Source: Cyanophora paradoxa CCMP329 (lineage: Eukaryota; Plantae; Glaucophyta). From it: a stretch of 64,000 bases of DNA. Below are positions 2,840 to 39,500 of this stretch, piece after piece (the first letter of the stretch is position 1; every line of letters begins with the position of its first letter). The notes under the pieces are model-generated. The model was not told where the DNA came from and ran no database searches. It saw only the letters and a list, made by a program, of their open reading frames with translations. A program made the position numbers and the translations under genes. The DNA is taken from assembly GCA_004431415.1 (NCBI GenBank), contig QPMI01000062.1, positions 1 through 64,000 of the forward strand. Direction: 5' to 3'.

Positions 2840-3455
2840 CGCGCAGCGCTGGAGGGCGTGCGGGGACTCGTTGGCGGTGCTGGGTGCGGCACGCTTGCGC
2901 CGGGGAGCGGCGGCACGACGCTGTCGCTTCCTACGTGCACCGCCGGCTTCGTGCTGACCGCCTCTCGCGTACTGCGCCCCCGCGCGAGCTGCTGACCAAG
3001 ATCGGCGCTTCGAAAAGGTTGGCGCCAAACGGGTTGCAAACTGGCCGACGCCGACGCCGTACCCCAGAAATTGTCAGGTCTTGAACCCGGCGTACGGCCA
3101 GCCTTGCGAGCGGTCCAACGCATTACCGAGCGCACGGCCTAGCTGCTACTTCGCTTTCTGCCCCCACCAAGAAATTTCGTACGGGTCGCGTAGGGAGAGC
3201 TTCTCCCTTGCACACGCGTCGGCCCAGCGCTCCCTGCGCTTCCATTCCAGTCAACTAAGGAGCTCTCAAGGGCAGCGCACGACGGCATCAACGCAACCAG
3301 TGCTGCCCGCATCGGCCTTCCACGGCCGCACCAGCCGCCCGGCATCTGACCTGTCATAACCGGCCTGCCCGCTTGCGTACGACAGCAGCAGAGCGGCTGG
3401 GCCGGCGCGCGGTCGTCCGTCGCACGGGAGGAGCTCGAGTCTAGCTTCCAGCGCC

Positions 3456-36500: not shown

Positions 36501-39500
36501 GAGCTGGTGGCGGATGACGGCCGAGCCGCGCATCTCGGCGGCGACGTCGGGGTCGAGGAAGCCCTGCCCGAAGTTGCGGTCGTCGAGGTTCAGGCGGAAC
36601 CGCTTCTCCATCTCCTTGTCGTCCAGCTCCAGGCTGTCCAGCCGCTGGCCCTCGATGAACTCGCCGGCCATGCCGTCCTCGCCGTACAGGAACTGGATGA
36701 TGTCGCCCATGCTGTTCCGCGTCGTGTTGTCGTAGTGCACCATCACGTCCTCCATCGCCTTGATCAGGCGGCGCTGGATGTAGCCCGTCTCCGACGTCTT
36801 GACGGCCGTGTCGATGAGCCCCTCGCGGCCTCCCATGGCGTGGAAGAAGAACTCCTGCGGCGTGAGGCCGCGGAGGTACGAGTTCTCGACGAAGCCGCGC
36901 GACTCCGGGCCGTAGTCGTCCTTGGTGAAGTGCGGGAGGGTGCGGTTGCGGAAGCCGAAGGGGATGCGCTTCCCCTCGACGTTCTGCTGGCCCACGCAGG
37001 CGACCATCTGCGAGATGTTGATGAAGGAGCCCTTGCTCCCGCTCGTCACCATCGTCTTCACGTTGTTGGAGCGCTGCAGGGAGCCCTGGGCCGTCTTGCC
37101 GGCGGCGTCACGGGCCTGGTTGAGCGCGCGGTTGACCTTGTTCTCGAACGACTCGAGGAAGGAGCGGCCGGGCTGCAGCTCCATCTTGCCCTGCTGCGCC
37201 TGCATGATCACGGCGTCGACCTCCTCCTTGGCCTTGCGCAGCGTGCTGTTGATGCTCTCCATCGTCATGGCGTCGGCGATCGTGTCTCCGATGCCCACCG
37301 AGAAGCCGACGTTGATGAGCCAGTTGTTGATCACCTTCTGGGTCATGTTGAAGAAGATGCGCGCCGTGTCCGGCCCGTGCTCGTTCATGATCACGTGGAT
37401 GAGCGAGCCGGCCGACGTGCCCAGCGTGCGCTTGCAGACGATGCCGCAGAGGAGCTCGCCGTTCTCGATGCGGACCTGCGTGTCGCCGGGGGAGATGTCC
37501 GTCGACTCGCCGTCGGGGTGCGTGGAGTGGAAGCGGATGATGTTGACGTTGGGGAGGAAGGTGGAGAAGAGCTGCTTGCCGGACCAGCGGGGGCCCTTGG
37601 GGCTCTTGACGATGGCGGGGATGGGGAGGCGCCCGTCGAACGAGTCGAGGTGCATCACGATGTTCATGATGTTGTCCCGCTCGATGAACGTGTCCCGCAG
37701 CGTCATCTTCTGCGCCGCCATCAGCGTGTCCTGCGCAGCCCCCCGTGTCAGCGACAGCGGCGCTCGGCGAGCGCTCCGCGGGGAGCTCGCCTGCACGATG
37801 CCCATGACGGGGCGGTTGGACTGGGGCGAGACGATCTGGCGCGGCACGGCAATGATCTCGGAGGCCTCGGCGCGCGTCTCGAAGCTCTGGGGCACGTGCA
37901 AGTTCATTTCGTCGCCTGCACGGGCGGTCAGCGCGGGGGCGGAACGCGGGGGGCGGGAGGAGGAGGGACGGGCCATCGAAGTCTGCGTTGTAGGGGCTCG
38001 TGACGGAGAGGTTCAGGCGGAATGTGGAGTAGGGCATGACCTGCGCGCCGGCCCGCGTCAGACGAGGGCCGCCAGGCGCGCTCAGGCGGGATGCGCGCCT
38101 TGATGCGGTGGGCCATGATGGACATTTTGTGAAGGGACGGCTGCCGGTTGAAGAGCACGTAGTCGCCATCCTGCGCCTCGTCAGACCTCCGTCCGGCTGG
38201 CCCCGCGGCACACCGGCGGACCTGGATGTGGCGCTCGACCCTGTACCCCGGCTCCAAGTGCAGGTCGCTCGCCTTCGGCACGTAGCGCAGATCGAAGCTG
38301 CGGCGCTGTCGGCAACGCGCCCAGTCGCAAGAGGAGCCGCACGCGCTCACCGAGTGCCGTCCGAGCGGATGATGTAGCGGGCTCCGGGGTACTCGGTCGG
38401 GCCCGCTCGGATCAACTGGTACATCCTGCGATCGATGGAGGTTAGCAAGCATGACAACGAGGGGCCAGGGGCTAGGAAGCGCTGCTAGTCCCGGGGCGGA
38501 TCAGTTGCAAGAGTAAAGGAGTCGATCACAATGGATCAGAAACTTAGTACGAGATTTTGCGATTGGTCTCATCATATTGGCGCGCGGGAATGGGCATTGT
38601 GTATGGCTGCATCCGCACCGGTCCATGTTGTACGGGGTAACGATCTCCGGGGTAGTGAGGTTGAGCGCAATCGAACGCGGAACGCCGACCTGCGCGGGGC
38701 CGGTCGCACACCGCGCGGTATACTGGCCAAGCGGGCCGGACCTGATCGATGCCGAGATTGGGGTCGGCCGTGATGACAGTACGGGCGCTGAAGTCGACGC
38801 GCTTCCCCATCAGATTGCCGCGGATGCGGCCCTCCTTGCCCTTGAGGCGCTGGCAGATTGACTTGAGGGCACGCCCCGACCGCTGCTGGGCGGGAGGGAT
38901 GCCAGGCAGCTCGTTGTCCATGTAAGTCGCGATGTGATACTGCCCGCGCGTCAGAAGAGCTCATGGCTATCGAGAGAAAGCACGCCCATTACCTGCAGCT
39001 GAGTGACGAGCTCGTTTATGTGGTGGGCGGGAGCAGCGTTCTGCTCGTTCTTCCTAAGCTGTGCATTTGCCCTAACGATATCCATCAATTTTGAGGTAAG
39101 GTCGTCCTGCAAGGGGGCGTGAGCAAGATAACTTGAACAAGGAAGCCGAGACAAGGACCTCCGCGCGCTGAACAGAGTTCATTGCGATGCCAGGACGAAC
39201 GGCGGCAGGCGGAACCGGAAGGTGCGTGATGCAGAACCAGTCCGGGCGCGCCCAGCGGGGATCCAGGCCCATATGCCTGCAATCCTCATCGCTGATTCTC
39301 TTAAATATGTTATAAACCTGGAGACGACGTCGGAAGCAGAAGAACGGGAAAGGGCATGATGCTTCGAACCTGTTCAGGCATAAGAATGATCTTCTTCTCC
39401 TGGTTCTCGTCCAAAGTTTTCTTGAACTCGGCAGTGAGCTTCAGCCCGTCCTTCATGATCTTCGGCTGAGGATTGCCGCATCCGACGCGCCTGCAACGCA

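Follow-up and report, generated by a model that had tools for sequence, protein, structure and literature searches.

A box C/D snoRNA in an RPB1 intron of Cyanophora paradoxa with a predicted guide to the stem under the sarcin-ricin loop

One intron of the gene for the largest subunit of RNA polymerase II (RPB1) in the glaucophyte Cyanophora paradoxa is several times longer than the introns around it, which raises the question of what this intron carries and, if it carries a guide RNA, which nucleotide that RNA would direct for modification. An initial annotation had placed a box C/D snoRNA in the intron, with a guide directed towards the sarcin-ricin region of the large subunit (LSU) rRNA. 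We followed this up in the window, by which we mean the whole stretch of 64,000 nucleotides of contig QPMI01000062.1 that was analysed. The window has a high GC content, dense genes and many very short introns, and in this it agrees with the published description of Cyanophora paradoxa, whose genome has a GC content of 67.6% and a mean intron length of 86 bp (PMC6704402).

Based on a Pfam search of the reading frames, the host gene lies on the minus strand and encodes Rpb1 domains 1-7 together with the CTD heptad repeat YSPTSPS, so that the initial identification as the Pol II largest-subunit gene could be retained. RNA contigs from four independent studies (X1, X5, X7 and X16) joined position 38425 directly to position 38619. 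As these contigs skip exactly 193 nt, with GT..AG at the ends, the interval 38426-38618 coincides with an intron. This intron interrupts an Arg codon inside Rpb1 domain 2, with the protein reading ..TPYNMDR up to the junction and MYQLIRAGP.. after it. The features of the host gene and its intron are the following.

Minus strand: RPB1 gene with Pfam domains PF04997, PF00623, PF04983, PF05000, PF04998, PF04992, PF04990 and PF05001
38426..38618, minus strand: host intron of RPB1, 193 nt, GT..AG, from spliced RNA contigs
38441..38445, minus strand: CUAAC, a candidate branch site located 16 nt short of the 3' splice site, with box D about 59 nt upstream of it

The other six introns found within 38000-39200 measured 58, 51, 53, 52, 53 and 52 nt. 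The snoRNA intron was thus the sole long one of seven, at about 3.5 times the local norm, where the initial annotation had spoken of about three times the usual length. Because the intron lengths are very uniform (51-58 nt in six of the seven), a much longer intron in this genome may serve as a cheap flag for an embedded non-coding RNA. The intron had also been described as richer in AT, and indeed a GC content of 0.45 was found at 38500-38599, over the snoRNA, compared to 0.63-0.72 in the flanks; the snoRNA is an AT-rich island set in a genome of about 67% GC. Judging from the sequence, CUAAC at 38441..38445 is probably the branch site of this intron. Box D of the snoRNA lies 75 nt from the 3' splice site, a distance that resembles the position rule for mammalian intronic C/D snoRNAs. 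The contigs of the mRNA-type runs, which hold spliced mRNA only, included no separate snoRNA contig, and this bears neither way on the accumulation of a small RNA. As an observation on splicing in the same gene, the 58-nt intron at 38041-38098 (minus strand) ends in GC..AG, not GT..AG, and was spliced out cleanly in all four runs.

On the minus strand, which is the sense strand of RPB1, the intron contains a complete box C/D snoRNA with boxes C, D', C' and D and a core of 75 nt. All four boxes were present at the spacing that had been described for them, and both their order and their spacing are canonical. From 5' to 3' the parts of the snoRNA are arranged as listed here.

38581..38589, minus strand: 5' arm of the outer stem, UCCCG (38589-38585), one unpaired C and GCG (38583-38581), from RNAfold
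38569..38575, minus strand: box C, AUGAUGA, a perfect RUGAUGA
38541..38554, minus strand: D' guide TCTCGTACTAAGTT, 14 nt, complementary to LSU helix 95 (5' strand) and the sarcin-ricin loop (5' half)
38540, minus strand: spacer t between the D' guide and box D'
38536..38539, minus strand: box D', CUGA, perfect
Between boxes D' and C', minus strand: loop tccatt, 6 nt
38523..38529, minus strand: box C', GUGAUCG, 6 nt after D', with the UGAU core kept and the last two bases degenerate
38505..38522, minus strand: D-box spacer of 18 nt, an orphan guide
38501..38504, minus strand: box D, CUGA, perfect
38489..38498, minus strand: 3' arm of the outer stem, CGC (38498-38496), two unpaired C and CGGGA (38493-38489), from RNAfold

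The spacer between box C and box D' is 29 nt long, and its final 15 nt consist of the 14-nt guide and the single t. An external stem closed by TCCCG and CGGGA had been proposed at the outset, and these two segments do pair, 38589-38585 with 38493-38489. RNAfold, applied to a 111-nt context, added the inner GCG/CGC pairing, and the resulting interrupted 5+3-bp outer stem was present in both the minimum-energy and the centroid fold. The stem does not directly adjoin the boxes and stands off from them by 5 nt on one side and 2 nt on the other. The folding energy of the same 111-nt context did not surpass that of shuffles (z = -0.02), as is normal for C/D snoRNAs.

We also determined how often such an arrangement of boxes arises. 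The composite box pattern, defined as ATGATGA, 15-45 nt, CTGA, 15-45 nt and CTGA, had a single occurrence in the 64 kb on both strands and was not obtained in any of 100 dinucleotide-preserving shuffles. When the window was searched with relaxed settings for further C/D candidates, the only matches were GC-rich and resembled coding sequence, and none of them was credible. Rfam, which had been put forward as a check of the snoRNA, lent no support: no family matched at its gathering score anywhere in the window, and the best permissive match in the intron, to snoU25 (SNORD25), reached 13.6 bits compared to a threshold of 50 (E = 7.5), which is chance level, and the snoU25 identity was rejected. 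A permissive match to SECIS_2 in the intron region (38665-38711, minus strand; 16.3 bits, E = 2.5) spans the adjoining exon and a 52-nt intron and was likewise dismissed as chance level. The snoRNA belongs to a very large and well-understood class of RNAs and matches no curated Rfam family.

The absent Rfam match, the unexceptional folding and the lack of a separate snoRNA contig would agree with a chance cluster of short motifs in an unusually long intron, or with the decayed relic of a snoRNA, and in either case no stable RNA would be produced. However, boxes C, D' and D are perfect, the pattern was not reproduced by any of the shuffles, none of the other six introns is long, and the guide is common to an independent canonical snoRNA that is described below. 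We therefore hold a chance cluster or a relic to be highly improbable, and the feature is very probably a real, well-formed intronic box C/D snoRNA.

The next question concerns the target of this snoRNA. By the fifth-nucleotide rule, methylation falls on the rRNA base that is paired to the fifth guide base upstream of box D or D'. The initial annotation had suggested 14 contiguous base pairs between the D' guide and the sarcin-ricin region, and we obtained 14 of 14 Watson-Crick pairs with two eukaryotic LSU fragments, L001 and L002, neither of which is the host's own LSU. Rfam scored both of these contigs as the 3' domain of eukaryotic LSU rRNA, and both contained verbatim a 19-mer consisting of the guide complement extended into the loop. 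In the cmscan alignment to the eukaryotic LSU consensus of Rfam (RF02543) the D' guide formed 13 Watson-Crick pairs and one G.U pair. This consensus reads ..agcu-u-AGUACGAGAGGAAC.. around the target; counted against that string, 12 of the 14 target bases agree with the consensus and a further one pairs as G.U. Its helix 95 is an 8-bp stem, acccagcu/agcugggu, around uAGUACGAGAGGAAC. By rough arithmetic, a perfect 14-nt match in the correct register to an LSU motif that is found throughout eukaryotes has a probability of about 1e-5 per guide, and a chance origin of the match is very unlikely.

Counting upstream from D', the fifth base is the A at 38544, within the guide. The U that pairs with it is the first U of AAC-U-UAG, the same one that had been picked initially, and it is the last U of the 5' strand of helix 95, where it closes the stem under the sarcin-ricin loop. 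In the host's own LSU rRNA, pairing with the guide would call for AACUU, or the AGCUU of the consensus, immediately before AGUACGAGA. The predicted target lies at about consensus position 3029 of RF02543, eight bases 5' of the A that is the target of ricin, and we take it to be position 2652 in E. coli and approximately U3019 of yeast 25S rRNA. In the Rfam consensus this U has as its partner the first a of the stem's 3' strand, whereas in the LSU fragments (L001:84-131 and L002) cmscan placed it opposite a C in a non-canonical pair. As the partner is a C in these fragments and an A in the consensus, the closing pair of helix 95 is variable among eukaryotes. The window contained no rDNA according to Rfam. 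Two other contigs were considered as full rDNA and rejected, one (L008) containing only an LSU 3' fragment and the other (L007) being of bacterial type and carrying tmRNA and tRNAs.

Additionally, metagenomes were scanned with a pattern consisting of TGATGA, a gap, the ten guide bases that face the universally conserved loop only, five free bases, CTGA, a gap and CTGA. The scan led to two loci, L003 and L004. The same pattern gave 0 matches in 596 Gb of bacterial and archaeal genomes, which served as an empirical null. The first of the two loci is the following.

L003:1495-1733, minus strand: intron of about 239 nt with a C/D snoRNA, in an ARP3-like gene on contig Ga0302315_10045764

The host of this second snoRNA is an actin-family gene with exons that read as ARP3. 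Its introns are rich in AT and contain long A/T runs, and the neighbouring intron measures about 68 nt. The boxes are GUGAUGA (C), UGAAGA (C') and CUGA (D), and a 10-bp terminal stem with one mismatch was found. The 14-nt guide, the spacer and the D' box are identical to those of the RPB1-intron snoRNA, amounting to 21 identical contiguous bases, of which 14 were demanded by the search. Both snoRNAs are intronic, and in both cases the host intron has several times the length of the neighbouring one. However, the host gene is another one, the body is shorter, the terminal stem directly adjoins the boxes, and outside the guide region, including the D spacer, the two snoRNAs are unrelated. A common guide with an unrelated remainder fits distant orthology and convergence on one rRNA site alike. 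Since an independent eukaryotic snoRNA carries the identical guide, the D' guide is, on this sequence comparison, under selection. The other locus, L004, was rejected as a second instance and attributed to chance, as only 23 nt separate its C-like box from CTGA and the five variable guide bases are not shared.

The D-box guide had been reported to be without a target, and this remained the case in our searches. The complement of the 18-nt D spacer did not occur in the window besides the spacer itself, no convincing partner was obtained in the three LSU 3' fragments, and the more than 100 matches of a 14-mer from the spacer to viral contigs were random and carried no signal. The spacer is of typical guide length, and its lack of a match in the window and in these fragments would agree with a real snoRNA in which the D' guide matches the host's own LSU poorly and the D spacer is the working guide for some other target, such as an expansion segment, a spacer, an snRNA or an mRNA. 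Such an arrangement is very unlikely in our judgement, as it would leave to chance (about 1e-5 by the same arithmetic) the perfect 14-nt match of the D' guide in the correct register, and as the snoRNA of L003 keeps the D' guide but has an unrelated D spacer.

Based on these results, the RPB1-intron snoRNA most likely guides 2'-O-methylation of the U that closes helix 95 below the sarcin-ricin loop, a prediction that we consider probable. The route to such a mark would begin with splicing of the RPB1 pre-mRNA and debranching of the 193-nt lariat, after which exonucleases would trim the intron down to the core snoRNP. The snoRNP would assemble on the C/D and C'/D' kink-turns with Snu13, Nop56, Nop58 and fibrillarin, with assistance of the outer stem, and the mature snoRNA would have a size of about 80-100 nt. 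In the nucleolus the D' guide would pair with 14 nt of the pre-LSU rRNA, along the 5' strand of helix 95 and on into the 5' half of the loop, and we infer that the host's own rRNA offers this match. Fibrillarin would then methylate the ribose of the U that faces the A at 38544.

Protists commonly have methylation sites that are specific to a lineage. To our knowledge the predicted target U is absent from the methylation maps of yeast and human, and we know of no methylation of yeast 25S rRNA beyond C2959. In Arabidopsis only two ribose methylations have been mapped in LSU domain VI, both in helix 100 (PMC8351944), and a review from 2024 states that the plant sarcin/ricin loop is apparently unmethylated (PMC11542601). 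Human helix 95 has been described as more modified than helix 95 of plants or yeast (PMC8351944). The guide string was absent from the supplements of the snoRNA catalogues of Ostreococcus, of plant families and of Dictyostelium, as well as from the main text of the Entamoeba snoRNA paper, and the text of the fungal snoRNAome paper made no mention of the position equivalent in yeast. Within this literature no earlier record of the target site was found, although a description in some other protist may exist. The predicted target appears to be unmapped in the main model organisms. More tentatively, and with considerable doubt, the U that closes helix 95 may carry a 2'-O-methyl group that is still unmapped in several protist or algal lineages, placed there by an old snoRNA family that is conserved only in its guide and is absent from yeast, human and Arabidopsis.

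Elongation-factor GTPases dock and become activated at the sarcin-ricin loop, which is also the site attacked by ricin and alpha-sarcin. The mark, if present, would be a ribose methylation at the foot of a highly conserved and functionally critical rRNA element, where the standard model organisms carry no modification. A mark on the closing pair could stiffen the base of the loop, tune the activation of translational GTPases or alter the susceptibility to ribotoxins. Our literature search returned no studies on glaucophyte snoRNAs, and within the literature searched the RPB1-intron snoRNA would be the first documented snoRNA for a glaucophyte.

Among known snoRNAs, those acting on the same helix allow the closest comparison of target sites. 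In mammals SNORD62 (Um4620) and SNORD78 (Gm4623) act near Gm4618 of 28S rRNA. Gm4618 itself, on the 3' strand of helix 95, is guided by SNORD91, and for mammalian helix 95 the 3' strand provided the only ribose methylation site that we found in the literature (PMC12288042). All three resemble the RPB1-intron snoRNA in being C/D snoRNAs for methylation of the helix that bears the sarcin-ricin loop. However, their sites are on the 3' strand past the loop, whereas the guide described here pairs along the 5' strand into the 5' half of the loop and picks out the closing-pair U, and there is no sequence similarity between them and the RPB1-intron snoRNA.

A second comparison is with TtnuCD32, a U14-like snoRNA of Tetrahymena thermophila, which is complementary over 15/16 nt to the base of helix 95 on its 5' side (LSU domain VI), while the U predicted from it, U3036, was found unmethylated by RiboMeth-seq; its authors proposed a chaperone role in this region (PMC6315972). 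Together with the unmethylated helix 95 of Arabidopsis (PMC8351944), this example argues for an alternative in which a stable C/D snoRNP base-pairs to the pre-rRNA at helix 95 and the sarcin-ricin loop as a chaperone of folding or assembly and keeps the loop open until late assembly, leaving no methyl mark. Both RNAs are C/D snoRNAs in which a long stretch is complementary to the base of helix 95 on its 5' side. However, the complementarity of TtnuCD32 takes in box D itself, and its phenotype is in 5.8S processing, whereas the RPB1-intron duplex is that of a canonical D' guide, whose 14 bp stop two bases short of an intact D' box. L003 moreover keeps the same register, spacer and D' box included, and this is the outcome expected from selection on a methylation site. 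A chaperone that leaves no mark is accordingly unlikely in our view, and guided methylation of the closing-pair U stays the preferred reading.

Read as a methylation guide, the RPB1-intron snoRNA finds its broadest parallel in the intron-encoded C/D guide snoRNAs, such as the vertebrate SNORDs and the intronic snoRNAs of green algae and plants. It differs from them in having no curated Rfam family and in a target that is off the Arabidopsis map (PMC8351944). In other respects it is built and placed as they are, with a C/D'/C'/D arrangement, a core of about 75 nt and one snoRNA per intron of a housekeeping gene, with a guide that ends two bases upstream of D', and with a position approximately 70-75 nt upstream of the 3' splice site.
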